A stretch of 63,753 nt of DNA, counting the filler, from Ministeria vibrans ATCC 50519 (taxonomy: Eukaryota > Protista > Filasterea), in assembly GCA_943704425.1 (NCBI GenBank). It is 5 parts of 5 records of this genome, joined end to end, with 100 filler letters (N's around TTAATTAATTAA, not from the genome) between each part and the next. Parts side by side here need not be neighbours in the genome. Positions count along the whole stretch, not along the records: positions 10,133 to 29,495 come from CALSCP010002452.1; 4 more parts are not named here. One strand, written 5' to 3'. Each line of letters opens with the position of its first letter. Positions within the stretch are counted from its first letter, which is position 1. Below, piece by piece: positions 10,133 to 29,495 of the stretch. A program made the translations under genes and the position numbers. Under the pieces are notes generated by a model. That model was not told where the DNA came from. It searched no databases and was given only the letters and a program-made list of their open reading frames with translations.

Positions 10133-10239
<107 letters not shown>

Positions 10240-12031
10240 TTAGTACTATTATTATTATAATTAAAAGAAGACGACAATATTAATTTTATTGTCTTTGTTA
10301 ATTACTCCTTCTTCTTCATTTTTCTCAACTTGGCTTCCAGCCCCTTCACACGCGCACTCAGTGCCTTCTCTCTTCCCTCAAACTCCTCTTTCAATGACTC
10401 GGCCATAATCTTTCTCTGCTCTTCCATAGTTTCCGCTAAAAGTCCCCTCAAAACCTCAAGTTCTCGTTTTTCCCTCAAATCTGCCACTTCTGCTTCCTTT
10501 CTTTCGTTCTTTCGCTCTTCTTCATCTTCTTCTTTGTCCTCTTCTTCTCTTTCTTCTTCTTCTCTTTTTTCTTCTCTCACCATTTCCACTTTGAATATCT
10601 CTTCCCGCTCAATTTCTCTCTCGTCCAGTTCTGTCTTGTCTTTTTCTTCTTCTTTCACATTCACTCGCAAAACTTTCTCTTCTCCATATGCACACAAAAT
10701 TAAATTAAAGTGCCTAAACGAAACAAATCAGTGAGCTTGTACATTATTAATTAATAATAATAATTATTATTAATGATTTTCTGGTTTTGCAAACCTTAAA
10801 TAGGAATCCACAAAATATTCCACCAAATCCGCACAACTGTTCGGCGTAAAAATCATATCGTAATTCGGAGGAGAAAAAACACTCTGGAGAATCATTCGAT
10901 CGCGAAACAACTCATAAGCCTAACATTAGCAGAGACCGTTTCATCACTTAATAATTAATAATAATGTTTGTTTTTGTTTTTGTTTTTTTGCATGTGGCTT
11001 TACTTTTTCGCGAGTGATCGAGTGACATTGATTGACACAATCTGTGTGTGTGTCGTAGAAAATAGAGAGAAAGGCGGAAGTTTCAAGCCAAGACAGATTC
11101 TTTTGGCGCGCAAACTAGAGCGAATGCAATAATATATTAATGTGAGAGGAAATGGTACATCGGAAACGATTGACTTCATACTTTGAGCGCATTTTGAAGA
11201 AGATCAATAAGAATGTCGTGTTGCGGTGCAAACCCAAGCCAACGACGTGCTACTGAGTTCTATTATGCGTATGTGTAAGACAGTATTACCTCCATTGTGG
11301 ATTACCGTTTGTGTTGGATCAGGCTCCGGGAGAAAACTCAGTTCATCGTTTGAGATGTCGGACTCATTGATTGCTAAACACAACAAATAATATTAATTAT
11401 TCAACAATAATTAATTTTTAACAATAGATCACAAAGTAATCACAACGAATTCGAAGGGATTGCCGTACATGGAGCACGTGAGATGCGTGGCTGTTCAACA
11501 AGCTCTAAAGGAGTAGCCGGAGTAGGAATGAGGACTTCTGCGGCGCGCGCACGGCTTCCTGGTCGAGAGCGAGGCTAAGTAGCACAGCAACGATGCACTT
11601 CATGTGAGACAATCGCTTACTGTGCACTACGTGTGTGTACAATAAGTTCAAAACAAACCTTTTTCGTGCTTGATTGACGCTTTTTGACAGCCGACGGTGG
11701 AGTCAGCGGCACAGGCTGGAGTGTGACAGCGACTGGGGGGCTCTCTCGAAGCGCATTATACTTAGTGGTTGCCGTGACAACGAGAGGGTCGTCAAAAAGA
11801 ACCGCCGCCACCTGCATTGCGGCTGATTTTGCGTCCAACTGAAGTCCACTGTCAATCACATCTCTCTCTTCAAGCATCGGTATCGAAAATGCCTCGGCCA
11901 AAATTTCTCGAGTCATTTTGTGTCTCCTATCTGTGCGACTGACAGAGTCAATCTGCAAAAGAACAAATCAATAATGACTTTTTTAAAATAATACACCCTT
12001 TAAGTGTTTCGACTACCTCTCGCATAGCCTC

Positions 12032-15000
12032 TAAGGCTCCAAATTACTATGTAAAGTAAATTGGGTAGTAAATGGTAAATGCGTTTTTACATATGTAAAT
12101 TGACTTTCACAACGAATATATTCGAGATTTATTTATCATCCAACTCTGATCCAGATAAAATATCGATAAAATATTTTTATCTTCTCCATTCCCTCCTCTA
12201 CGCATACCCGTGCCCTCCCAACTCTCAATATCCTCAACTACCCGAAAGTGAAGAGTGGCAAGACAAGAACAGCGTCCATACAGACAAAAAGAAAACATGT
12301 CCGATCGAGACCTCGAGAATGACAGTGATAATGACGAGATCGACACTAGCGACCGTGAGCAGGCGAGCTCCAACGACTCTGTCAGCAGCGATTCGAGCGA
12401 CGACGCCGCCGACGACGATGCCAACGACGACAGCGACGACGACAGCGATGACGACGACGAAAACGATATCATTGCAGTGCTGCGCCCTCCCGCGCGCGAG
12501 GATCTCGCCCACGAGCGCCTCTCCTACATGGACACTGTGGAGTTCCTCAACTCATTTGCTGACAAAAGCGGTCCGTACATGAGAGAAGGGTTCAAAATTG
12601 CAGTCAGACCAGACATCAGAAACCGCGCCAAAAAGGTAATAAAAGAACAAAGCGCGCCGAAGTAGCTGAAGTCTCTCTTCCACGCCAGGCCCCGCAATGG
12701 ACCTATTATTTGGAGCTCTTGTCTCAGCCTGCCACCTCCAAAAAGCCATTTACTCACGTGTGTGTCCTCTGTGGTCGCCTCCTACGCCTTCAGGTGACAC
12801 GCAACGCAGCCGTACACCTTCAAGGTCGTCACAGGTTCGACAAAGACACTCCGTTCGATCGCCACTTCTTCGCCGAAGAGAATGACGACCTCGCGGCAGC
12901 GAGAACCCCGGCCGGGGTCGTCTCGGTGCTGGACATGATTCGCAAGCAGGCTGTCGCCGACTCGGAGAAGAAGCGAAAGAAGCGCGATCTGCCCGTCGGC
13001 GGCAATACGGAGCAAGACACGCGCGATGTGTTCAGGTCGCGGTTCCCGCGCAGCAGCAACGACTCCACCAACTTGATACACGATGCGATTGCGCGGTTGG
13101 GGGTTGAGCATGATATGCCAATGTCCTTCGTGGAATGGCCGGCGTTCCGTGATTTGATTGACATCTGTACTCTCGTACCCAGAGCAAGCTACACTGTCGA
13201 ATCCGAGCCTTCCTACAGCGCGCGCCTCGACCGCACCTACCAGCACATGCGCAGCACCGTCGGCGCTGTCTTACTACATCAAATGATGAGCGCTGGGCAG
13301 GGGTCAATGTATCTGACCATGGACGGCGTTGTAACGGCGCGAGGCGAGCTCGTCCCAATCCTGCTCAATTGGCTTGACGAAGACCTCAACCGCCACTCCA
13401 TCACACTCGCCACTGTGTTTGAGCCTGGCAAATCGGCCGCCGACCTCGCTGCCGCTGCGTTCGCCTCACTCGCCGAGTTTCGACTGCTCGAGCTGCTCGA
13501 CACCAACCGCAACGACTTTGTCCACCTTCATGCCTATGAACACTTTATTCGCTACTGCGACGAGTACCGCAAGGAGCACGGCGACGAGACAGACGAGAGC
13601 ACCATGGTCGCCCTTTACGCCCTCGGCGGCGCGACGACGGACGGCGCGATGCTCAACCTCTTCTGTGAGATGTGCAACAACGACGAAGCCCATACGACAT
13701 GGTGCATTTCTCATCGCCTGAGCCTCGCGTTTCGATTTTCTTTTGGTACGAAAGATCAACAGTCAATCGTTCCGCCAGAACGCACCAGCCGCACGCTTCA
13801 GATCGCCTTTAACAACATGGCGGAGGAGCTGGTGACGCTTTATGCCGACTCGAGAAGCTTTTGGGAGCTCCAACTACTCGCCAAGCGCTTCAATCTCCAA
13901 CCTCCTGTGAAGATGAACTCTGCCACAGAGACGCGCTTCCTGTCCCAGCTGAACTTGTACACCGCGATCAACGACAACCTCAAACTCTTTCGCGCCATCT
14001 GCGACGACCCCGCCACCGACACGCCCGACACCATTGTCCGCCTCTTCAACCCACAGCCTCAAGGGGCTGATCCTCCTCCAGGCCAACCCGACAACCGAGT
14101 GACTCTCTCGTTTGCCAAGGAGCTCTCGAGCATCATGCCCATCATCTACGCCGCCAATGACCTGCAACTTGCGTCTGAGGGAGACAATGTCGATGCCCAG
14201 CGGTTCCAGTCGAATCTCGCGCTGTTCATCAATCAACTCGATGGGAAGCACCCGTTCAAGTCTGTCGGCGGCACGCATGTCTCGCTGCAACAACTTTGCA
14301 GCCACTCCCAACTCACCGCCGCTCTCGCTAACAACCTCAAGTATTCCATCTCGTTCTACTTCGACAAGGATTTGGAAAAAGACTGGTCCATGCTCTTGGC
14401 CACCATCCTGCACCCACGCAACAGCGGGCACCCCGCAACAGACGACCCAGAGCTCAACCTCGTCGCCAAGTCGGTTCGTTTCCTACGCTACCGATTCACC
14501 CATTTATGGAGCAAAGTGACCGGCCAAGGGCAACCGAGAATGGAGCAAGATGACCCGAAGGAGAAGATACAGGAGACGCACAAGATGATGATCAAGATTC
14601 TCTGTGAGGAGACATACCTACAGCTTCTCATCGACGGAAAGGGACACCTGCCGCGCGAGAAGCGTCCACGAGCGCATGACAATGGCAATGAAGGGCGTCT
14701 GACGACCAAGCGAGCACGGCGTGCACAGGAGAACCAGTCTGCTGTCGATGCCTTTATGGCCGTCTCGGAGGATGAAGAAGAAGAGGAGGAGGAAGAGGAG
14801 CTCGACGATGATGAAGGCGACGCCGAAGATGAGGAGCGCAGAGAAGATGCACGTATCCGACGGCTGGCGATGCCGACTCTTCTCCCGTGGCTCCGGCGCA
14901 AGCCTAAGGTCGGTGACGAGACGTTCACGTTGGTCGACTACTGGAGAAACGAACCGGACTCTGTTTTGCGCCGTGTTGTGCGTCGCATCGGTGCTTTCGT

Positions 15001-15333
15001 TCCGACACAGTGCGGGGTTGAGCGCGTCAACAAAGTCCCGAAACAAGCCTGGAAAGGTGACCGTAGCTCAATGCTTCCCAAGACTGTCATCCGCAACACA
15101 TTCCTCCACACCAATATCACGTACTTCCCACCCAGGGACTTCAACTGGACCATGTTCGACAATCCAAAGTGATAAACTATCTTGTAATTATCTACTCCAA
15201 ATTTACTATGTAAATAAATTGTAAATAAAAATAAAAGCCAATTTATTTTACTCAGTGCCCTTGGGAGGACCAATTTACTCTTTTATTTTTACTACCCTGG
15301 TCAAAACACTTTACATAGTAATTTGGAGCCTTA
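12032..15333 (+). mobile_element. Autonomous hAT-superfamily DNA transposon, 3302 bp
   Basis: Perfect 26-bp TIRs TAAGGCTCCAAATTACTATGTAAAGT (12032-12057; reverse complement at 15308-15333), a perfect 8-bp TSD ATAGCCTC (12024-12031 and 15334-15341), subterminal GTAAA motifs, and an internal transposase gene. Confidence 0.96.
12297..15172 (+). CDS. hAT transposase, about 940 aa, one 53-nt intron (12636-12688)
   Basis: A phase-0 splice joins NRAKK|APQWTYY. BED-type zinc finger (CVLC...HLQGRH), catalytic-region YLTMDG and TTDG, CxxH motif (WCISHRLSLA), ETRF, and a C-terminal dimerisation region LVDYWR...PTQCGVERVN. Confidence 0.88.
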
Positions 15334-15416
15334 ATAGCCTCTGACGAGAGATGGCGCCAAGCGTAAGACAGCATCACCAAAAAAAAAAAGATTGAAAAAG
15401 ATCAGTTATTTTATTC

Positions 15417-17967
15417 ATGGATTCGGATATATCTGCCACCGCGAGCACCGACAACCGCAGCAGCCTGGTCCGCGTCCTTTTGATCGACTTTGATCACTCC
15501 CAAGGGCCCATTGTCGAGCGCAGCTTTCCCGCAGTCGCTGAGGAAGATGGTATGCTGTCACCCCAACCACTGCAACGCCATCGCATCCTATGCGTTTTTC
15601 TTAACTTCTGCCATGACGCCGCTGCATCTTCAATGACAGTGTGGGTGTGTGTTTGTGTGTGTACATGTGTGCGTGTGTTGCAAAACACAAAAAACGTTTC
15701 ATGATTCTGTGTTTTTTGATACTTTTTCGTCTCAGACACGAACGATGCGTCTCCCGCTCGCGTAGCGCTACCGCCCGCCTGGAAACACCTGCCCTTCTAC
15801 TGCCTACCCGATGGCGCACACAACACCGACGCAGGCGTGGTGTTTTTCTCCCTGCCCGCTGCGCACGGCGGCGCAACGGTCTTCTGCGTCGCCGCTCATC
15901 GACAAATGCCCAGCACTGAACTTCGTGTGCGTCCGGCGCACGTGAGCCGTGCCACTGTCCACAAGAGCATTTGTGTCATCCTCCAACGGCCCCTGACGGG
16001 TCTTATCAAAGAACAGGTGCGGAGTGAAGACTCAACACACACAAATAAACGCACGATATGATTATTAAACGCACTATATGATTGTCTCTTGTACTTTTAG
16101 GTTGAGAAAGCTGCCAACGATTTGTTTGCGCAGCGCGACTTTACCAACTTGGATGTGCTTGAACAGCTGCTGGTGGACGTTTCACAGCGACTGAATCATG
16201 AGGAGGTGACGGCTGCCGACTTTAATGTGGGCTGGACACCGTCGAGACTGGTGCTGCGCTTTCGCCATCAAGCACTCACCCTATTCAAACTTCTCATGCT
16301 CCAAAAGCGCGTTCTTGCTGTGGGTACGGTTGGAAAAAAATTATATCCACACCCTCACTGTTTCACTCTTTTTTCTGTGCTAGGCTCGAATGCAGGCGAC
16401 GTGAGTGGCGGTCTCATGACCCTTGCGTCACTGTTTCCCTCTGTGCTTGGTGGCGATCCGACGGTCGAACCAGACTCGATTGATGCTCGATTGGGGATTC
16501 CTCTGTCTCTATTTGGCGAAGAAGGAGAAGGAGAGTTGGGTTTGACGGTGTTTCGGCCGTATTTGCCGTTGCAGGATACAGACACAGTGATGGAGAAGAC
16601 AAAGAAGAAGACGAAGAAACAGTCGTTTCTGGTGGGCTCCACCAATCAGTTGGTGTTGCGTGAGGGAAAGACGCGCGCCGATGTGGTGGTGGATTTTGAC
16701 AGAGACACGCTGACGGTGGTGGACCGAGAAGGGAAGGGAATGGAGGAGGAGGAGGAGAGAGGAGAGGGTGGGAAGGGACTGGCACGATTGGACACGATGC
16801 TGTCGCTGACGGTCGCTGATAGACGATTTATGGGGAGTGTATTGCATGGGATTGAGACGGAGGAGAGTGAATTGAGCAGTGAGAGTGGGGGCGAGAGAGA
16901 AGCGAAGAATGATGCGTTTGTGCGTCGAATGTTCCGAATCTACCAGAGTCGGTTTTTGGCTGTGGCGATGGGAGTGCGTGAGGCGGCACGAGTGGTGCGT
17001 GCTCGAGAGGAGCAGGGTCAGAGCAAGACGATGGAGGGAGAAAGGAAGACGGGTGTTGTTGCTGCTGCTGCTGCAGGTGGGGAAGAACGGAGTGTACGGA
17101 GTGCTGCTGAGCTGATGGATCGATTGGCGGGACAACGGAAGACGCGCGAGAAGCCAGGAAATACGGAAGAACGGGAGGATTTGTCATGGGATGTGCACGA
17201 TGAGGAATTGGTGGACGCAGAAGAGGATCGCGAGGAGAACGAACGGGATGCACGGACATTGGTGCGGGAAGAGATTGACCATAAGAGGGAAGTGGACGAT
17301 GACGAGGATGATAACAACAACGACGCTGATGAGGAGAAGGAAGAGACGATGGAGACCAATGTAGGAGCGGAGTCGCGCGAAGGGGCGTCACTGGCGCGTT
17401 TGTGTGGGTCGCTTGTGAGCGCACGATCACAACTGCGCGATTTTAATATGGAGTTTCATCGCGAGTGGATTCAGTTGGAGGTATATCGTCGTTGGAAAGC
17501 TCGCTACGACGCAAAAGTGTTGCTGTTGCCGCCACAGCAGAAAGTGCGACGGCAACAGGAAGGACAGGAGGAGGAGGAGGAGGAGGAGGAGAGTGTGGCG
17601 GAACAGGACGATCTGCGCGCACTGTTGCGATTGGGCCATCCCAATGCGGGTGCGTTGAACATGCGCGACCTGCGACTGCGCATGGAACAGGACGTAGAGC
17701 CAGTCATTGAGAAGGCGATTGGTACAATTAAGTGTATGTGTGTGGTGTGTTTGATTGATTGATTGTGTGTGTGGTGTAGACACGCTGTTTAATGGAATTG
17801 ATGCGGTTGTGGCAAACGTCACAGACTCATCGACTCCCGCCGGAAAGATCGTACAGAGCGGATGGGGCGCTTTCACTCGCTTCACAAGCTACTTGCAGAC
17901 TGATGCTACGATTCAGCGAATGATTGGGATGGGGGCAAAGCCAGAGGAGACCGAGACGAATGAATGA
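15417..17967 (+). CDS. AVL9: AVL9 late secretory pathway protein (DENN-related)
   Basis: VLLIDFDHSQGPIVE, WKHLPFYCLPDGAH, VSRATVHKSICVI, LFAQRDF, LVLRFRHQALTLFKLLMLQKRVL, PYLPLQ, FLVGSTN, LSLTVADRRF, DFNMEFHREW. Confidence 0.9.
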
Positions 17968-18002
17968 TAGTAAATAAAAAAACGCAATGTGAATTGTGTG
18001 TT

Positions 18003-18948
18003 TTAGTCGTCTGCGTGTGCAACAGCAAGAATATCGGCAATGGAGCCGAGAATGACATTGGGGCGGTAGTTGAATTCGCGTGTGCTTGCGACTGTGCGGG
18101 TCACGCCCGACAGAACAAGAATCTAAAGAAAGAGATGAGTTGAACTTTGAGCGAGAAAAATTAAAACGTCGCATTGAGAAAAAAAACAGACAGTCAAAAC
18201 AGAAAAAGGAATGCGAACAAAGTGATAGAGAGAGAAAATCCCAAAACAGAAAATCGCAAAGAAGCAGACATAGTTACGAGATACGTTCCTACCGTGTGCA
18301 TTCCTGCTTCCAATCCTCCAATAATATCGGTATCCATTCGATCTCCAATCACAACTGTATCAGATGATGCCACATTGAGTTTCTGTCGCGCCTATATTAA
18401 AAACGAATTAGAAGAAGACACACTAACAATCACAACAGGTAACACTTAAAGCACCACAACACGCGCCATCATAAAACATATAAGAGAGAGAAAGAGAAAC
18501 AAAGTAATAGAGAGAGAAAACACACACACACACATAAGACAAAAAATTGACACACAATGACACAGAGTTTTATAATAAATACACACACATAAGACAAGAA
18601 ATTGACACACAATGACATACAGTTCTCATCATGATCGGATTGGGTTTTCCCAAATAGTACGCCTTCTGGCCCGTCGCCACCTGAATAGGCTCCACAATAC
18701 ACGCAGTGCCTGGAAGCACGCCATCAGTCGACCGGTCAAATCTATCAATGAATATCATAGCATAGAGAGAGAGATAGTCAATTGGTCAACTTGTGACTAA
18801 CTAAAATTATCGAGAGGAAAAACAGCGAAAAGAAAAATGTGGTTACTTGTCAATGTTTGTTGCGATTAGTCTTGCGCCTCCGTAGACACAGTTAATTGCA
18901 ATCTATTTGAAATGATTTCCATTTTCGTTTGAGTTCTCTCTCTTTTTG

Positions 18949-18980
<32 letters not shown>

Positions 18981-19695
18981 CTCATATGTTCATAGCAAAA
19001 AGTTTGTGTTTCGCCAATGACAACGTAATCGGGATCAACAGCATTCATAGTAAAACCAACATCATGTAAAGCGGTAATGAGTCTAAGAGAGAGAAAAATA
19101 AGCAAACCCAAACCCTAACCCTAATGTTATGTTCATGTGATGTGTCTCTCTCTGCCACACAACACATAACTCTCTGATTTCTTACCCCGCATCTCCAATC
19201 GCATAGCACGTCCCATTGGGACACTGCTCCTTCAAGAAACTGGCAGTGCTCAGCGCAGACGTGTGCACCTGCTCAGCACTCACATGAATTCCCAATCGCG
19301 CTAGTTTTTGCACAATCTCTCGCGGTGTTCGCTCACTGCTGTTCGTCAGCAAAACAAACTCCTTCTTCTCAGTCTACACACACATACACACACACACAAT
19401 CACATACAGTCAGATCTTACTCTCACTCGGTCAGTATTACTTTGAGCCACTGAATAAAGTCTGCTGCGCCCGGAAGAAGCTTATTCTGATAGTACAGCAC
19501 TCCGTCGCAGTCAATAATCCACCCGCGTTTGGCCGTCATGTCCGTCTCAATGGCTCTCACTTGCATTCGCTCGTCTAAACACAACCCACACAGATACAAT
19601 GGTTACAAATCATCATAAATTTCTCAGCAACCGTTCGAATGGACGGCAATCAGGGATCGGTACGAGAGAGAGAGGGTTGCGATCCTCTCATTTCC

Positions 19696-19746
<51 letters not shown>

Positions 19747-19757
19747 CTTTGTTTCTT

Positions 19758-19789
<32 letters not shown>

Positions 19790-19804
19790 NNNNNNNNNCA
19801 CACA

Positions 19805-19876
<72 letters not shown>

Positions 19877-20618
19877 ATTTCAACCTCTTTTCAGAGCACT
19901 TTTCAACTGTTCTGTTGCAACGTGGATGTTGTCGCCACAGATAGCCTTGGCAAAGAGCGGCTCAAGCGTCGTTGCGAGCTGAGTGAGTTCCACTGCGTGT
20001 GCGTCGCTTGAGAAGGGCTTTGCCACAATACGACTGTGGATGCGCGCCACTGTCTCCTCCGAGGCGGACGCGCTGTCGCTGCTGCGTTTGCTGAGTTTCT
20101 TCATGAGCTTGGCAAAGCATTCGTCGTTGATCAGCGAGAATTTATCGAGAAGATGAACTTGCACGTAAGTGTCAATGAGGCGCAGACGAAGGTCCTGTGT
20201 TGCGCGCAGACACTCTGTCCAGGCCATGCGGTCGAGCGCATTCGCCTGCAAGCACACCGATCAGACGCACCGCATGAAGTGCTGTTGCCCGCGAACAGAG
20301 GCGTGGCGTACCTGTTGCTGCAGTCGTTTGATTTCGCTCGTGCAGTGTGCCACAGTGCGCACAAAGAAGTCCAGAGTGTGCGCCAGATCCTGGTCCACCG
20401 CGACCAGCCACGCGTCCATGTGCTCAGACGTCTCCGCTTCAGCCAGGGAGTGCTTCAAAACGCTGTAGCTGCAGTAGTACTGCGCCCTGTGAGTCCCAGA
20501 GAGAGAGTGAGACAGAGACAGAGAGAGAAAAGTGTTGGGATGACATGACAAAACGCCGAATTTTTCCCGTGTACCATTCAGGGTTTCGCTCGGCAAGCAG
20601 ACGGAATGCAAGACGCAT
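18003..20618 (-). CDS. Putative SPX-domain + NagD-like HAD-IIA phosphatase fusion
   Basis: SPX part: MRLAFRLLAERNPEW|AQYYCSYSVLKH...FSLINDECFAKLMKKLSKR...KPF...LEPLFAKAICGDNIHVATEQL. HAD part: WIIDCDGVL, LLTNSS, ARLIATNID, YLGKPNPIMMR, IGDRMDTDIIGGLEAG, ILVLSGVT...YRP. A phase-1 GT-AG intron (19884-19575) joins them in frame (KRD ERMQ). The domain calls are firmer than the fusion itself. Confidence 0.7.
19696..19873. repeat. (CT)n microsatellite inside the predicted SPX-HAD linking intron
   Basis: Direct inspection; small N gap at 19790-19798. Confidence 0.9.
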
Positions 20619-20856
20619 GGTTAAAATCAAAGGCGTCCAGATGAATTGGATGATCAAGAAACGAAAAAAAATTATATTATCAATCGCAAAAATTTATAAA
20701 ACTATCCTTCAAAAATCAAAATAATTATCAATTTATCATAATTATCCTTCTCTTTTCTGTCCACTGATCACCCTCTCCATTCGCCGTGTCTACCTCTGAT
20801 TCAACGCCGTCCGTCCGTCCTCCTCTCTTCTCCTCCGTGCGCCCACTGCGATCAGC

Positions 20857-23141
20857 ATGAGTTCATATCGGCTGTTGGATGACGACGCAGACGCCACTGT
20901 CGCCAGTGCGACCGGTACGACGCCCCACGAGTGCGCATGTGTGTGTGCGTGGCCATGTGTGCGTGTGTGTGTGTGTGTGTGTGTTAATTCATCTCTCTCT
21001 TCCCCTCTCACTTGTGACTTGCCCTGACTGTGTCCTGACCCCATACCCGCCCAATGCTCCCTTATCCGCGTGCCCTCGCACCCCCGCCCCCCTCCCTGTA
21101 GCCCCACCTGGCGCTGTGCATCCGCCCAAGAGCCACCGTGCCGTCGATGCGGACCTAGGGTACGTTCCGCCTGAGCTTGACAACCGCTATGTCATTCCAG
21201 ATCACTCTACAACCCACATGGACCGACACCTCATCTCGTCCAAGCCCTCTAAACCATGTACGTCTCCTTCTCCTCCAAAATAGCCCGACAACAACCCGTC
21301 AGTTTCTCACACCAGTCACATTTGTCATTTTGCTCCCTATTATTATTTTTTTTTGTCCTTTCCCTCTTTCCTTTTTTGCCTCTAGCCGTCTCCGATGAGG
21401 ACGTCTTCCTTGCCGCGACCCTCATTGGCGATGCTCAACACCACCACAAGTCGCGCTACAGCCGGGACATGGAACAACTCAAGTAAGATCACATTTGGTC
21501 ACTGTGTGTGTGACGCAACTCATTGTGAAACACACGCTCACACACACACACAAACCATATTATAGAGCCTATGCTGCGTACAACTCACAGCTCTACACGA
21601 TTGCCGTCGACATTGTCCTCATCCTCGACCTGTGCCTGGCTATCTTCGAGAACCCTGCACCCCGCCAGGTCCTTGCGCCCGCCTGGGTCACGTCTGTCAT
21701 CGAGCTCTTCTTCATTGCCTTCTTCTGCCTTCGTCTCCACTCGCGTCGCTGTTTCTACTCCTCCCAAAAGCGTTTTTGGCACGACAAGAAACATCGCTTT
21801 CTCATTGTCATTGTAGCCATTCAGGTGAAAACACAACAAAGGAAAGAGAGCAAAGGAGATTTTTGACTCATTCGTTCAAATCTGTGTGTGCGTGCGTCTC
21901 TCATTATAGTTGGTCGACATATTCATGTACTTTATTATGCTCAAGTTTGACCCTGACCATGCAGTGCGGTGGTCGCGTGTGCTACGGCCCACGTACATCA
22001 TCATATTCAAAGAACAGGTAACAGTGCGTGTAAATGTTCAATCGTGTCACTCACAGTCACTACCGAATCAGATCCGACGTGGATTCCGCAATATCCGACG
22101 AACAGTGCCGAAGACACTGCCCGTTGTGTGTTTGGTGTTGCTTAATGTGGGCATGTTCACAATGTTTGGAATGGTGCTCTATCAGGGCACAGAGGAGGGC
22201 CGGATGTACTTTAACACATTTCCAGATGGTACGCACACACACACACACATTTTCAGCGCATCCACTTAGTCGCCCGCCAAGCACACACCACACACATCAC
22301 ACACAATCACACACACACACAAGACAAAGACAGACAGACACACACACACACACACACACAACCACACAATTTGCGCTCATCCAATGCAAAAAATTCTCAA
22401 ACGAGTTACACACTCTCAAATTGTCTTAGGTTTTTGGAACCTGTATGTGCTTGTGACAACGGCCAACTTTCCTGACGTCATGATGCCAGCGTACTCGCAG
22501 AACCGCGCTAACGCACTGCTCTTTGTCGTGTTCCTCATCACATCACTCTTCGTGCTCATCAGTATCACTTTTGCCGTCATTTACAATCAGTACCGCTCAT
22601 TTCTCAAGGAAGAGCTGCGCCATGTCATCATCCGCCAACGCCATGCAATCCTCAAGGCCTTCAATATTCTGTGCACTGCGGACGCCACACTTGAAAAGGG
22701 TACTTTTTTGAGACTGATGCGCGTGCTCAGTCCGGAAGACACTGAAGAGAAGGTGAGACATACTATCATTTCCCTCTCACGCTTATTCTCACTCACTCAT
22801 GCATACACGTTTTATCCAGCGTCTGCTACACTGGCTTGTCCTTGACGTCGACAACAGTGGCACAGTGGGCTATGAGCGCTTCTCTCGCATTGTCGATCTG
22901 CTTAACATCCGCATTACTCAGATTCACGGCTCAGTGCACATCTTTGTGAAAATGTGTCCTGGGTTCTATTACTCTGCACCAAGTGTGTTGATCTGTCGTG
23001 CTGTGTCTCACAAGTGAGTGGTTTTGCACACATTACACACATTGCACACACACACACCACAAAGACACACACACATACACACCACAAAGACACCACAAAG
23101 ACACACACACATACACACCACAAAGACACACACATCACAAA

Positions 23142-23227
<86 letters not shown>

Positions 23228-25230
23228 AGCTGTCTAAAACGTAACTGTGTAGGTACTTTCGATGGCTGTTTGATGCACTGATTCTGACCAATGCCGTTTT
23301 GTCGCTTGTCATCTCATCCACTGACCCACGAAACCAAGCCGTTGACATTGTCTTTGTGTGTCTGTTCAACATGGAGCTTCTACTCAAGCTCTACGCAATG
23401 GGCCCTCGCGCGTTTATTCGCGACGTGTGGAATGTGTACGAGTGATGGACCGAGTGTGGCTGGGGTGTGTGTGTGTATGTGTTACTCTAATCTGTGGCTC
23501 TCTTTAAATTGTATTCTAGCTTTGATGTAATAGTCATGACTGTGGCGACTATTGCAGTGGTCGTTCAAGTGGCCCAAGACGCCGAGACAACCTCTCACGC
23601 ATTTGACTTTGTCTCCTTCTCCGTCCTTCTCCGTCTCTGTCGTCTCATCAAACTCATTTATCACATTCCAGTGTAAGATTAGATATTCATTCATTCACAC
23701 AAATATGATGGTTGTGTATATTAATGTGTGTTGTTATAGGTTCCACTTGACGCTAAAGACCATTGTGGAATTGAAACCGGCGTTTATGACGTATGGTGCC
23801 ATTGTCACATGCATTTACTACGTATTTGCCATTGTCGGTACGTTGAACAACCGTCGAGAGAGAGGAGGGAGAAAGAAACAAAGTGATAGAGAGAGGAGAG
23901 AATGTGACACGAAGACAGAGACAGAGAGAGTGCAAAAGATAGTGAGTCGAGTACTGCATGAGAGTGTGTGAGTGCATTACGGAAAGCGAGACACCCACTC
24001 ATCACTTTATGTCGTCTCTATTTACAGGAATGGAGATCTGGGGCAACATGATCTCAACGGGCTGTCCTAACCCACAGCAGTACAACTTCACCATACCCGT
24101 CTCATACGACGACACTTTCACCTGCGAGGTCAACAACAACCCAAAGCTCTACGATTCGGGCTTTGAAGCGGACAATTATTTTGCAAACAACTTCAATTCC
24201 ATTGGAGAGTCCTTTGTCACTCTCTTTGAGTGTACAGTCGTCAATCAATGTCAGTTCAAAACACACACACTCACATGCACAATCGTTTTTACCTGACTCA
24301 CATGTGTTTGTGTGCTTCTGTATGTGTGTGTGTTTAGGGCATGTGATTACGGAAGGGTTTGTTTTTCTCACTAGCAAATGGGCTCGTTTATACTTCTTCG
24401 TCTTTCATTTGAGTATGGTCGTGTTTCTTGTCAAGTAAGCGCGCTTAGCGACTCGCTGTCACTCTGACTAACTCACTCATTCACCCTGCTTTACTCTATC
24501 AGTATTGTTGTTGCGTTTATTGTTGAAGCATTCACCATGCAATTGGATTTGGACTCATCAAAGGTCGAAGATGACCTCATTAAACGCGTTGAGGAAATCG
24601 GAGTGTCAACAGAGTAAGCTTCCGAAATAAGAGTCACTCAATCACTGACATCCACTCACACTCACTCTCTCACTCACTTACTGTGGCAATCAAACAATCT
24701 CTTATATGCACTGCATAACTGACACTTTGGACAGGAGCTCTGAGTACACAATGGCGGATGAGCGACTGATGGAAGACCGCACAGACTTTACGGACGAAGA
24801 AGACGATTTCAGCGGCTCGCCCAACTCACAATCTTTATCCAATGTGGTCCGGAACCACTCTCAGTCCACCACCTCCCACTCTGAGTCTGATCCCGTGTCC
24901 AGTTCCACAGTGGCCTCATTGGCTCATCGCTATAGAGCTCTCTACAAGACCACTGCAGAAACTATCTTACAGCAGATTTTTGCCGCTGAGTTGACCGAAG
25001 AAGTATGATGCTTCTGATCACATTGAATAATGGACTAACTCATAGTTTTGCTCTTTCTCGTCTCTGTTTTTCTTCTTCTATCACGTGTTTCTTTCTTCTT
25101 CGTGTAGGAACTGATGAGTCTGGATGTGGAAGAACTCGACGAAGACACTGAGCGTGCTGTGCAGTCCGATTCTCTCAACTCGAATGTCTTTTCTCGCTTT
25201 TCTCGCATTTTTGCTGCCACTCACTCGTGA
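20857..25230 (+). CDS. Two-pore channel, TPC3-like
   Basis: Two 6-TM domains. Pore 1 LYVLVTTANFPDVMMPAY; pore 2 NNFNSIGESFVTLFECTVVNQ|WHVITEG (NQW as in TPC3). Also LAATLIGDA, LAIFENP, an N-terminal dileucine (YRLL), and a last exon ending FAATHS*. Confidence 0.88.
23050..23226. repeat. Compound (CA)n / CACCACAAAGACA minisatellite in a TPC intron
   Basis: Direct inspection. Confidence 0.85.
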
Positions 25231-25596
25231 TCCCACAACATTTCTTGTTTTTTTTTGTTTTTCTTCCTTTTTGTAATGAAGTTTATATTATTTGATTTGT
25301 TTTGTTCCACTCAATTCATGGTCACCATCAACGCCATCTAGTTCGTGACTCGCCCTTCAAGCGTGGACGCTCCTTCTCGATGTCTTTTGGAAAGGAGCGT
25401 CCATGCTGTTCGTGACTTGCCCTTCGATTGAGTGACACTGCATGAAGCTCGATCTATTTCAGCTGTTAAACCTTGCACACTTTTATCCCACTTTTGCAAT
25501 GCGATGCAGAAAAAACTCCCGGCGAGACAGCAGTGGACGGCGTACCAACACCGACCCATCCCACCGGTTAGCAAGCAAGAGAAAACAAGTCAGTTT

Positions 25597-25641
25597 TAAG
25601 TCACACCCAAGAAATACTAAACCATTGAAAAAAAAAGTGTG
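25597..25641 (-). terminator. Candidate RNA Pol I terminator T2 (T9 tract, then GGGTGTGACTTA)
   Basis: Second copy of the bipartite module at 25822-25866 with the same 17-nt spacer length, downstream of the 28S. Confidence 0.5.
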
Positions 25642-25821
25642 TGCTTTTGCAGCGCATCCACCAAATTCTCCTCGTACACCACTATGACGTGTCGAACCCC
25701 GACACACCTACAGTAAATCAGTCCTACACCCTCCCAGACGGCGGGCCCACACACGCACACCTCATTAGCCATGCAAGATAAAACATGGCGCTTGCGCGCC
25801 CACACACGCACACATCCCCCC

Positions 25822-25866
25822 TAAGTCACACCCTAAAAACCCACGCCACCTGAAAAAAAAAGTGTG
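25822..25866 (-). terminator. Candidate RNA Pol I terminator T1 (T9 tract, then GGGTGTGACTTA)
   Basis: On the rRNA sense strand it reads CACAC-T9-CA-N17-GGGTGTGACTTA, immediately after the 28S 3' end. Confidence 0.55.
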
Positions 25867-25884
25867 CCAAAATAGGCGGATAAC

Positions 25885-26273
25885 CAAGTGACCAGCGTGC
25901 GCTCAGCGGATCGACATAACAAAGATGTCTCTGCCGCTTACACGACGCGGTCAGCGTCCCCTCGTCTTGGAGCGGTTTGTGTCTGGCCAGCATTAAATTG
26001 TCATGGACGGGTTTCGAGGCGCGCGCTTCCGCCGCCCCGCCACACCGTGAAATGATTCAGACCGCTTGCGCGGCTATTTCTATACGTCTGTTGCCGTTGC
26101 CAGACTAAAAAGCTCTCGCGTTCTGGAGCGGATTCTGCCTTAGAGGCGTTCAGGCATATTCCAAGCACATGTTAGCTTCGCTGCATCGTCTTTTCAGGCG
26201 ACAGCTATGCCAATTATGTGAATCAGGAGTTCCTCTCGTACTGACCTGAATTACCATTGCGACAGCGTTTCGT

Positions 26274-26328
<55 letters not shown>

Positions 26329-26374
26329 GTTAGTGGGTGAACAATCCAACCATTGGCGACTTCTGCGTCGCAAG

Positions 26375-26408
<34 letters not shown>

Positions 26409-26431
26409 TACGTCGCTATGAACGCTTGGCA

Positions 26432-26474
<43 letters not shown>

Positions 26475-29093
26475 AGGCCCAGACTCCGGGCAACTAAAGG
26501 ATCGATAGGCCACGCTTTCGCGGTTTGTATTCACACTGAAAATCAAAATCAAGCGAGCTTTTACCCTTTTGTTCTACGAGAGATTTCTGTTCTCTCTGAG
26601 CTCGCCTTGGGACACCTGCGTTATTATTTTACAGATGTGCCGCCCCAGCCAAACTCCCCACCTGACAGTGTCTATAACCCGGATCACGCGCCCAAAGGCA
26701 CGCTTAAGGCAAGAAGATGGGCATTGCTGCCCGCTTCCGTTTAACTATATAAGTAAGAAGACGATGAAAGCAGTGGTATTTCACTGGCGCCGGAGCTCCC
26801 ACCTATTCTACATCTTCCATGTCTTTTCACACAGTCGGATTAGAGTAAAGCTCAACAGGGTCTTCTTTCCCCGCTGACTAGGCCAAGTCCGTTCCCTTGG
26901 CTGCGGTTTCGCTAGATGGTAGATAGGGACAGTAGGAACCTCGAAAACCAATTCATGCACGTCATTAGTTATATGACGAGGCATTTGGCTACCTTAAAAG
27001 AGTCATAGTTACTCCTGCTGTTTAGAATGGCTTAAGCTTGTCTCCAAACATTGACAAGAATTCCACTGAGCATGACTCACATTGTGTCAACACCGTCCAA
27101 CGGCCATCACAATGCTATGTTTTAATTAGACAGTCGGGTTCCCCTTGTCCGTTCCAGTTCTGAGCTGGAAGATGCCGTGGCAGGACGCCACGCAACCCGA
27201 AAGCTACGCAACTGGTGACGCCGTCCAGAGTCAACAGCGCACACGCCGCGCTCGCCCCCGAAAGAGCTCGCACAGCACGCACACCGTCAGACCCCTTCAA
27301 ACACGCCACCCCTAACCACCTTCCCTCAGAGCCAATCCTTCTCCCAAAGTTACGGATCCATTTTGCCGACTTCCCTTACCTACATTCTTCTATCGACTAG
27401 AGGCTGCTCACCTTGGAGACCTGATGCGGTTATCAGTACGGCCGAGCGCAAAGTCTACTTGCGTTGTGCTCACCTCAATTTTCACGGGTCGTTTCACATG
27501 CACCGGGCCGCGACAAGTGTCGCAGCTTTGCCAGCGCCAACACAGCTTCTCCGGCCAAACCGATTCCGCTGTCTTGCCCGCACAATGCGGTACGCTTGTC
27601 AAAAAGAAGAGATAATCCTTTCCGAGATGTGAACCGACGTCTTGAGGCTCGTTTACGTCGCCGTCTCAAAAAGACCTGCGTCTCGGTTGGGGAATATTAA
27701 CCCCATTCCCTTTCGGAGGCTGGAGTGTTTTACCACTCGCGTTAACTCGGCGTTTGCCTACTCCTTAGGACCGACTAACCCGCGTCCAATTGCTGTTCAC
27801 ACGGAACCTTGCTCCACTTCAGTCTTCAAAGTTCTCATTTGAATATTTGCTACTCCCACCAAGATCTGCACTAGCGGCCGTTCGACGCGGGCTCACGCCC
27901 AACGCTTTTTCACGACCGCCACGCCATCCTACTCGTAGACCAAAACAACTTGGATCTACGGCAGAGCATAGGCCCGACGCTTGAGCGCCATCCATTTTCA
28001 GGACTAACTGGTTTGGCAGGTGAGTCGTTACACACTCCTTAGCGGATTTCGACTTCCATGACCACCGTCCTGCTGTCTCGACCAGTCAATACCTTTTGTG
28101 GGTTCTGGAATGAGCGTCGAGTTTGGCGCCTTAGCCCTGCGTTCGGTTCATCCCGCATCGCCAGATCTGCTTACCAAATATGGCCCACTTGGAGCACGTC
28201 GCATTCTATGTCGGGCGAGTTCACTCAAGCAACTCACCCTTCCCACCCATTTAGAGTTTGAGAATAGGTTGAGGATGTTTCATCCCCAAGGCCTCTAATC
28301 ATTGTCTTTACCAGATGGAACTGCTTAATACTCCAACTATCCTGAGGGAAACTTCGGATGGAACCAGCTACTAGAGAGTTCGATTAGTCTTTCGCCCCTA
28401 TACCCAGGTCTAATGATCGATTTGCACGTCAGAACCACAGCGGACCTCCATCAGAGTTTCCTCTGACTTCATCCTGCCCAGGCATAGTTCACTCTCTTTC
28501 GGGTCGCCTCACCTGCGCTCTTACTCAGATCTTTCATGGCTAATCCAGACCGGCCGATTGTGCATGCGTTTGACCGCACTCCAACCTTGTTTGCTTTCAC
28601 TTCGCCTCGGGGTTTTTCCACCCAAAGACTCGCGCATGTGGTGCACTCCTTGGTCCGTGTTTCAAGACGGGTCGGTTGGCGTTATTCTCCTCAGGCATCC
28701 TTGGCGAGTTGGTCCTTCCTGCCACAGCACCACGACACGACAATGCACGCATTCCCGCACCGCTGCCACGACATGTTGGGCCGCATTGCTGCTCGCCGCG
28801 TGTTCCCACAGTCGCCGCCGACGTTCCACCGCGCGTCTATAAAGAGGCCAAAACGCAAGCGCTCGACCCCCACCTTCCGCACGGCTTTTTCCGCCCGCAC
28901 GCAACTGATGCTGAGTTGTACGACTTGCAAGTGCACAGGTGGACACCGCGCCTCTGCGCAACGAGGATTGCTCTCTCGTCCACGCACAGCCGCAGCGGCA
29001 TCCTGCTGATTACAGCCGCTCGTTCTCACGCCAATCGCTTCCCTTTTAACGGTTTCACGTACTGTTTCACTCTCTCTTCAGAGGGCTTTTCAT

Positions 29094-29127
<34 letters not shown>

Positions 29128-29389
29128 GTGCAAATATTTAGCTTTAGAAGGAGTCTACCTTCCACTTTGGGCTGCGATCTCAAGCAACCCGACTCTTCGA
29201 AGGCGCTTTGTAAGAGCTTAAAGCGCACGTCACACACGGGGCTCGCACCCTCTCTGGCCGGACATTCAAATCCAGTTTGACGCACGTCAGCTCAAAAGAC
29301 GCTTCTTGCAACTACAACTCGTCTTGGAAGACGATTTTCAAGTTGAGCTTTTCCCGCTTCACTCGCCGTTACTAGGGGAATCCCTGTTG

Positions 29390-29421
<32 letters not shown>

Positions 29422-29455
29422 GTTCAGCGGGTAGCCTTGCCTTATATGAGAGCAA
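25885..29455 (-). rRNA. 28S (LSU) rRNA gene, essentially full length, divergent; ends approximate
   Basis: ITS4 primer site TCCTCCGCTTATTGATATGC near 29400, ACCCGCTGAACTTAAGC, H69 GGAGTAACTATGACTCT, peptidyl-transferase centre sequences, and sarcin-ricin loop AGTACGAGAGGAAC near 26235. A short piece of ITS2 runs to 29495. Confidence 0.97.
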
Positions 29456-29495
29456 AAAAGAAGTGATGTTTTTCTTATGGGCTGCGTCGCAAGCT

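Follow-up and report, generated by a model that had tools for sequence, protein, structure and literature searches.

A Ministeria vibrans gene joining an SPX domain to a NagD-like HAD-IIA phosphatase, a candidate phosphomonoesterase gated by inositol phosphates

Eukaryotes sense phosphate status through SPX domains, which act as receptors for the messengers InsP7 and InsP8, and the known partners of these domains are transporters, a polyphosphate polymerase, a ubiquitin ligase, a cyclin-dependent kinase (CDK) inhibitor and a phosphodiesterase. In surveys of algae, diatoms and dinoflagellates, the domains found together with SPX are EXS, MFS, RING, VTC, SLC/CitMHS, DUF202 and a few more. The gene described here, which we call SPX-HAD, joins a predicted SPX domain to a predicted NagD-like phosphatase of the HAD-IIA class. 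It is located on the minus strand, at positions 20618..18003, of a stretch of 63,753 nucleotides (nt) from Ministeria vibrans ATCC 50519 (assembly GCA_943704425.1, 29.7 Mb in 2860 contigs), within the part that comes from CALSCP010002452.1 (positions 10,133-29,495). This whole stretch is referred to as the window, and all the coordinates given are positions along it.

Several described proteins resemble SPX-HAD in one part or another. The fungal glycerophosphodiesterase Gde1 (SPX-ankyrin-GDPD; SPX structure 5IJJ) is likewise a soluble hydrolase with SPX at its N-terminus, and it regains phosphate from metabolites inside the cell. However, its catalytic domain is a GDPD phosphodiesterase and ankyrin repeats lie between both domains, whereas in SPX-HAD a domain of the HAD phosphomonoesterase type follows after a tether of about 20 residues. 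The yeast Phm8, which frees inorganic phosphate (Pi) from nucleoside monophosphates in starvation, has the role that is proposed here for SPX-HAD, although Phm8 is without SPX, is transcriptionally controlled and belongs to a different HAD subclass. With respect to the phosphatase part, E. coli NagD (2c4n) and the Bacillus/Geobacillus YutF/NPPase share with SPX-HAD the fold class, the four catalytic motifs and the C2a-type cap, but they are stand-alone proteins of about 250-265 aa whose motif I comes within approximately 10-26 residues of the start, whereas SPX-HAD has about 213 extra N-terminal residues and nine spliceosomal introns. The best understood of the enzymes controlled by SPX is VTC4, formed by SPX and a polyphosphate polymerase, which is the model for the switching of an attached catalytic domain by inositol pyrophosphates (PP-InsP) bound to SPX; according to PMC10167327, PP-InsP binding to SPX activates the polymerase. 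VTC4 differs from SPX-HAD in its catalytic chemistry and in being a member of a membrane complex. Finally, S6PP domains, of the sucrose-phosphate phosphatase type, are of the HAD-IIB class. The nearest reported case is a gene model with such a domain, the predicted SPX-S6PP of Selaginella, which joins SPX to a HAD-superfamily phosphatase and was described together with a predicted EIN3-S6PP; it is known from domain scans, and the accessible text of its report gives neither transcript nor biochemical support.

The literature search, in which domain-architecture databases were outside the scope, found no paper pairing SPX with Hydrolase_6 or NagD, and the term SPX-HAD was not met. This agrees with the initial annotation of the locus, whose author knew of no characterised SPX-HAD-IIA protein, and the SPX family surveys list other partners. 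Within the literature and the collections searched, SPX-HAD would be an SPX-regulated kind of protein with a new class of partner.

The gene comprises 10 exons adding up to 1398 nt, or 466 codons, and its introns (9 out of 9 with GT..AG borders) have lengths of 66-310 nt, as checked by script. Every exon translates stop-free, and the ATG at 20618 is the first one of the mRNA. It is a single gene, with a single spliced mRNA and a single open frame of 466 residues (Table 1), and the protein is laid out as SPX (residues ~1-193), a linker of about 20 residues and a complete HAD-IIA phosphatase of the bacterial NagD/YutF type. The borders of intron 3, as read from the sequence, are those that had been annotated: the donor is AGAG/GTTGA, with the exon ending at 19885 in phase 1, and the acceptor is TTTAG/AC GAG CGA ATG, with the following exon starting at 19574, just before DCDGV. 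The codon split by this intron, g/ac, encodes Asp.

The splicing of both parts into one mRNA was studied with public reads. Five runs from two studies (P1 and P2) account for some 45% of the words sampled from the window, which is approximately its exon share, and two DNA runs account for about 95%. Contig 1 of run X1 (study P1; 1848 nt) and contig 10 of run X5 (study P2; 1476 nt) lie on the exons with 0 mismatches and skip all the introns. The contig coordinates are continuous over 19574/19885, passing from 1201 to 1202 in X1 and from 842 to 843 in X5, with no letter between; this joint was read from the aligned contig pieces, not from printed junction rows. The predicted 19885-19574 junction was thus confirmed, in frame, by cDNA-like contigs of two separate studies. 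In the DNA run X13, by contrast, the introns are retained, and the microsatellite interrupts the contigs (at 19689 and 19884). The existence of exon-only contigs against an intron-bearing DNA run indicates that the intron-less form is cDNA and not genomic.

These contigs also bear on whether the fusion could be an artefact of assembly or scaffolding joining two unrelated contigs across an N gap. Intron 3, which consists mostly of GA microsatellite, does contain a 9-N gap (19790-19798), and the DNA contigs break at the microsatellite as said. However, exons 3 and 4 are linked in frame by independent RNA contigs of two studies, over an intron with canonical GT..AG borders, and we find this explanation scarcely credible. 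The gap is absent from the initial annotation, and the RNA contigs bridge it.

In the bins adjoining intron 3, the mean depth was exactly the exon fraction, both in X1 (191.9 x 61/92 = 127.2 and 191.9 x 89/92 = 185.6) and in X5 (15.4 x 61/92 = 10.2). As the depth beside the intron equals the exon share of the bins, the intron flanks are covered by no contig, and by the same bin arithmetic the RNA depth is zero on 19575-19605 and 19882-19884. At the contig level, neither retention of intron 3 nor a start inside it was seen, and no contig begins in exon 4. All this must be considered in view of another reading, by which the locus would be mainly two genes, an SPX-only gene ending at TGA 19880 and a HAD-only gene from Met 19566, the spliced fusion being one isoform among several. 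The stop codon just inside the donor and the Met just past the acceptor, which is aligned with the bacterial start, are in agreement with two genes, and contigs lose rare variants. However, the fully spliced contig is the only one over the locus in both RNA data sets, and this, together with the zero depth at both ends of the intron and the lack of contigs beginning in exon 4, makes the two-gene reading quite improbable. Likewise, the separate transcripts that the initial annotation had considered as the contrary case, with SPX ending at TGA 19880 and HAD starting at 19616 or 19566, were not found at the contig level.

Profile, database and fold searches were run exon by exon. Exon 3 matched the Pfam SPX model (PF03105) with an E value of 7.9e-6 and 26.6 bits, at model positions 288-333. 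In a six-frame scan of the whole genome, the exon 3 locus gave 24.7 bits for SPX, and 28.3 bits with in-frame neighbours, being then flagged over the cut-off. For the N-terminal SPX half, the evidence is the direct reading of motifs. The N-terminal consensus of SPX domains is M-[KR]-[FL]...PEW-x3-Y-x2-Y-x2-LK, and exons 1-2, which read MRLAFRLLAERNPEW/AQYYCSYSVLK, fit it from residue 1 with the canonical spacing. In AtSPX1, the binding clusters comprise the phosphate-binding Y25, K29 and K139 and the lysine surface K136, K140 and K143 (PMC7810988). The Y-x3-K at 20467-20453 is the equivalent of Y25/K29, and the K-x2-KK-x2-K at 20110-20087 has the pattern of K136/K139/K140/K143. The latter belongs to the annotated lysine cluster FAKLMKKLSK, which is present at 20116-20087 and also matches the XPR1 lysines K158/K162/K165, whose mutation lowers phosphate export.

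An exhaustive HMMER search with exon 3 against 1.84 billion representatives recovered only the same open reading frame (ORF) and one 246-aa plant-like SPX protein (P0002), which aligns with exon 3 over helices 3-6 (32% identity; BLASTP E value of 6e-10). Since this alignment stops at the end of exon 3, the border of the SPX domain coincides with intron 3. From the SPX side, this HMMER search with exon 3 allowed no fused relative to be traced. In addition, scanning the JGI metagenome contigs with exon 3 gave no match, the ESM Atlas returned for the same exon only irrelevant bacterial clusters with low recognition, and the SPX exon of the SPX-EXS gene of this genome, used as query, found only itself. 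By its residues, the N-terminal domain is predicted to be an SPX domain with the ligand-binding positions intact.

The C-terminal part passed the Pfam cut-offs of the HAD-IIA models: exons 4-5 correspond to Hydrolase_6 (51.8 bits against a cut-off of 27 in exon 5), and exon 9 to Hydrolase_like (40.3 against 22). The four annotated HAD motifs DCDGV, LTNSS, GKPNP and GDRMDTD are all present; they correspond to DxDGx, T/S, K and GDxxxTD and are in register with the bacterial rows of an alignment made with the relatives described below (A1). In the comparison with NCBIfam models, the exons were nearest to NagD (PRK10444) and TIGR01457, and farther from eukaryotic PGP (TIGR01452) and from the LHPP-type TIGR01458. 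Two more precise identities were considered and rejected. The model of the eukaryotic phosphoglycolate/pyridoxal phosphatase (TIGR01452) scored lower than those of NagD and TIGR01457 on most exons, and, as regards a NagD orthologue, the summed exon scores were about 113 bits against the PRK10444 equivalog cut-off of 368. The nearest bacterial relatives, with 252-263 bits on PRK10444, are also below that cut-off of 368 bits. As the scores are far under it, NagD-like is a fair description, and the substrate of NagD is not transferable.

When metagenome contigs were scanned with exon 5, 45 prokaryotic loci were obtained, with identities of 34-69% (most of them 55-69%). Nearly all of them consist of an unbroken ORF, about 260 aa long, and the GC content of their contigs differs widely. 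None of these 45 relatives (0/45) has an N-terminal domain, and their motif I is within approximately 16-26 residues of the likely start. The tblastn comparison of the 45 ORFs with the window gave 5-6 collinear segments whose ends fall on exon borders, with 46-59% identity, and in the alignment A1 exons 4-10, which are about 48-58% identical to the stand-alone bacterial proteins of about 260 aa, tile them end to end, the cap that lies between motif II and motif III being covered as well. A profile search with A1 found more than 8000 bacterial proteins of about 260 aa (Lentisphaerae, Spirochaetes, Desulfosarcina, Firmicutes), some of them named NagD in their source. SPX was in none of the best 120 of these more than 8000 matches; this is a weak negative, as fused proteins to ~490 aa are in the length range and were possibly crowded out. 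The closest solved structure to the bacterial relatives is that of E. coli NagD, 2c4n. The C-terminal domain is therefore described as a predicted HAD-IIA NagD-like phosphatase with all the catalytic motifs. Hence, the anatomy given in the initial annotation, an SPX domain fused to a HAD-IIA phosphatase, stood, with one spliced mRNA, one frame and the key residues of both domains kept; the regulation by PP-InsP and the class of substrate that it had also proposed are inferred by analogy.

The surroundings of intron 3 offer an indication about the origin of the gene. The SPX frame, if read on, meets a TGA after the first 2 nt of the intron, a Met located three codons past the acceptor aligns with the bacterial start Met in A1, and the intron sits exactly on the border between the SPX and HAD domains. 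These three features suggest that two adjacent genes, first SPX and then HAD, were joined into one as the intervening spacer, together with the stop codon of SPX, turned into intron 3. According to this, a HAD gene of bacterial type would have adjoined a stand-alone SPX gene. Apart from SPX-HAD, the genome has a single Hydrolase_6 gene (contig C986); this paralogue is of the PGP type of eukaryotes and is only about 26% identical in exon 5, against 55-69% for the bacterial relatives. As the HAD part is far closer to bacterial proteins than to the paralogue of the host, its horizontal acquisition is suggested. Moreover, the six introns of its own that the HAD part has indicate a settled eukaryotic gene and not contamination.

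Within intron 3, a stretch of about 51 nt (19624-19674) is found again, with 96% identity, on a different contig of the genome (G000:C2206:61706-61756). RNA contigs of X1, X5 and X6 match 19624-19659 and then continue on both sides into sequence that is not of the window, so they may derive from the C2206 copy. An Rfam scan of the locus gave only sub-threshold hits, on the microsatellite.

Regarding function, we consider it probable, as the best explanation of the data, that the gene encodes an SPX-NagD-type fusion protein, born by gene fusion at intron 3, which acts as a phosphatase of small phosphomonoesters gated by inositol phosphates. The conserved Tyr/Lys cluster of the SPX domain would bind InsP6, InsP7 or InsP8, and the domain, once occupied, would alter the access to, or the activity of, the HAD core or cap through the tether of about 20 residues that leads to the strand of the catalytic Asp. 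In this way, the stripping of phosphate from small phosphomonoesters would track the phosphate status of the cell. By analogy with NagD, the likely substrates would be nucleoside monophosphates or sugar phosphates. Our guess is that the enzyme would be restrained at high PP-InsP, when phosphate is replete, and released as PP-InsP falls, this direction not being derivable from sequence. The genome holds an SPX-EXS gene (XPR1/PHO1-type), at least three loci of IPK-family kinases and a match to the N-domain of PPIP5K, and these kinases and the PPIP5K-type match indicate that the machinery for the SPX ligands is seemingly present. The VTC (polyphosphate polymerase) domain was not found in the genome scan, an absence that is not proven by a fragmented assembly. 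More tentatively, we put forward the joint proposal that a NagD-type gene, probably acquired horizontally, was welded to an SPX gene through a spacer that became an intron, and that its product may be the first phosphomonoesterase gated directly by inositol pyrophosphates.

A different role for the two domains would be that inositol phosphates or pyrophosphates are themselves the substrate of the HAD domain, recruited to it by SPX. SPX-HAD would be in this case a fourth kind of PP-InsP phosphatase, feeding back on the signal. The logic of the architecture can be cited in its favour, as well as the fact that the HAD-IIA members include LHPP, which cleaves pyrophosphate. However, the exons score best on the NagD/YutF-type models and poorly on the LHPP-type TIGR01458, and we know of no HAD-IIA enzyme that acts on PP-InsP, so that such a role seems very improbable. 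A review recognises just three families of PP-InsP phosphatases, none of them HAD.

Several observations weigh against a gated fusion enzyme of the kind that we favour. First of all, exon 3 alone is slightly below the Pfam gathering score for SPX (26.6 versus 27.8 bits), and exons 1-2, which would form the N-terminal half of the domain, gave no significant profile hit when tested exon by exon (Pfam, and the PDB for exon 2). The SPX part is very divergent and without close relatives in the collections searched, and it may have lost ligand binding by drift. These collections yielded the fusion from no other species, and there is no evidence of conservation. Regarding the transcripts, contig-level data leave room for rare or minor isoforms. 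The runs were taken as RNA by guess, although their intron-less contigs and the loose poly(A) end that X5 shows at 18005, which belongs to the convergent plus-strand transcript, argue for cDNA; they bear three organism labels with identical sequences and provide no evidence of conservation across species. Finally, the collections searched were mostly prokaryotic, which makes the bacterial origin of the HAD part uncertain.

Part of these observations would also be expected if the fusion were real but its N-terminal domain, no longer sensing ligand, were a degenerate helical extension, serving for example in oligomerisation or localisation and attached to a NagD-like phosphatase with a constitutive housekeeping role. 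In addition to the divergence of the SPX part and its score just under the cut-off, the sequence search of the PDB with exons 2 and 3 gave SPX only at an E value of 0.97, exons 1-2 alone have no hit, and the AlphaFold model of exon 3 alone, although all-helical, is of low confidence (pLDDT 52.9). However, all six canonical ligand-binding positions are retained with exact spacing, which is unexpected in a drifting bundle of helices, and kinases for the synthesis of the ligands are present in the organism. Taking both sides into account, a degenerate extension appears unlikely, and the SPX-NagD-type fusion gated by inositol phosphates is preferred.

Table 1. Features of the SPX-HAD gene, with positions along the window.
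Feature	Position	Strand	Evidence
mRNA assembled in run X5, 1476 nt: 54-nt 5' untranslated region (UTR), 466-codon ORF and short 3' UTR	17982..20672	-	
Exon 1: start codon and SPX N-terminus, MRLAFRLLAERNPE and first 2 bases of a Trp codon	20575..20618	-	RNA piece 20574-20671
Exon 2: SPX helices, Y-x3-K as YSVLK at 20467-20453	20312..20486	-	RNA piece 20311-20485
Exon 3: SPX C-terminal half, K-x2-KK-x2-K helix FAKLMKKLSK at 20116-20087	19885..20245	-	Pfam SPX
Intron 3: phase 1, GT..AG, at least 310 nt, GA microsatellites, 9-N gap 19790-19798, in-frame TGA 19882-19880	19575..19884	-	Spliced out in X1, X5
Exon 4: linker of about 20 aa, Met 19566-19564, HAD motif I DCDGV 19512-19498	19441..19574	-	Pfam Hydrolase_6 5e-6; alignment A1; tblastn
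Exon 5: HAD motif II LTNSS 19349-19335 and cap start	19186..19373	-	Hydrolase_6 8.7e-14, 51.8 bits
Exon 6: cap domain	18980..19082	-	PRK10444 (NagD) 4.7e-6; alignment A1
Exon 7: cap domain, GARLIATNID	18847..18902	-	Alignment A1; RNA piece in X6
Exon 8: HAD motif III GKPNP 18650-18636	18621..18741	-	TIGR01457 4e-5; alignment A1
Exon 9: HAD motif IV GDRMDTD 18346-18326	18293..18391	-	Pfam Hydrolase_like 3e-10, 40.3 bits
Exon 10: C-terminal strand and helix, 18122-18006, stop TAA 18005-18003	18003..18122	-	tblastn; alignment A1

Other particularities were observed along the gene. Intron 5 contains a telomere-like run, TTAGGG TTAGGG TTTGGG TTT on the gene strand (19104-19124), and in intron 6 a run of 29 A directly follows the donor (18949-18977), a tract on which oligo-dT is likely to prime internally in cDNA libraries. 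The CT-rich tracts of low complexity in intron 8 (18483-18520) and intron 9 (18216-18238) reached a summed depth of up to about 20,000 in the DNA run X13, against about 240 elsewhere; this extreme depth and the many false joints identify them as high-copy simple repeats of the genome. At the other end of the gene, the X1 contig runs past the apparent 5' end (20671-20672) with 14 extra A on the plus strand (T on the gene strand) that are not genomic, and their explanation may be an artefact, or else an extension that is non-templated or of low complexity.

An Avl9-like transport protein is encoded on the plus strand at 16122-18005, in convergent orientation with SPX-HAD, by an ORF of 546 aa (Pfam Avl9, 4.9e-30). 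A contig of X5 ends in a poly(A) run after 18005, and the 3' end of this Avl9-like gene overlaps the stop codon (18003-18005) and the 3' UTR of SPX-HAD. Upstream of SPX-HAD, an ORF on the plus strand (22384-22842) carries a piece of an Ion_trans domain (E value of 3.8e-6). Neither neighbour looks functionally linked to SPX-HAD. In the upstream scan, the P1BS motif (GNATATNC) was absent from 20619-21100.

In a review of the pathway, the tuning of the enzymes that recover phosphate from the own metabolites of the cell is called enigmatic. If the proposed reading of SPX-HAD is true, this gene would provide a new output of the SPX/inositol pyrophosphate pathway and a link, in one protein, between the phosphate signal and the intracellular recycling of phosphate. 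As a soluble protein with its SPX domain at about 20 residues from an easily assayed phosphatase, it would also be a compact model for the switching of enzymes by SPX, easier than the membrane complexes. Finally, the relics of stop and start codons that flank intron 3 make this locus a clear candidate case of gene fusion by intron creation.

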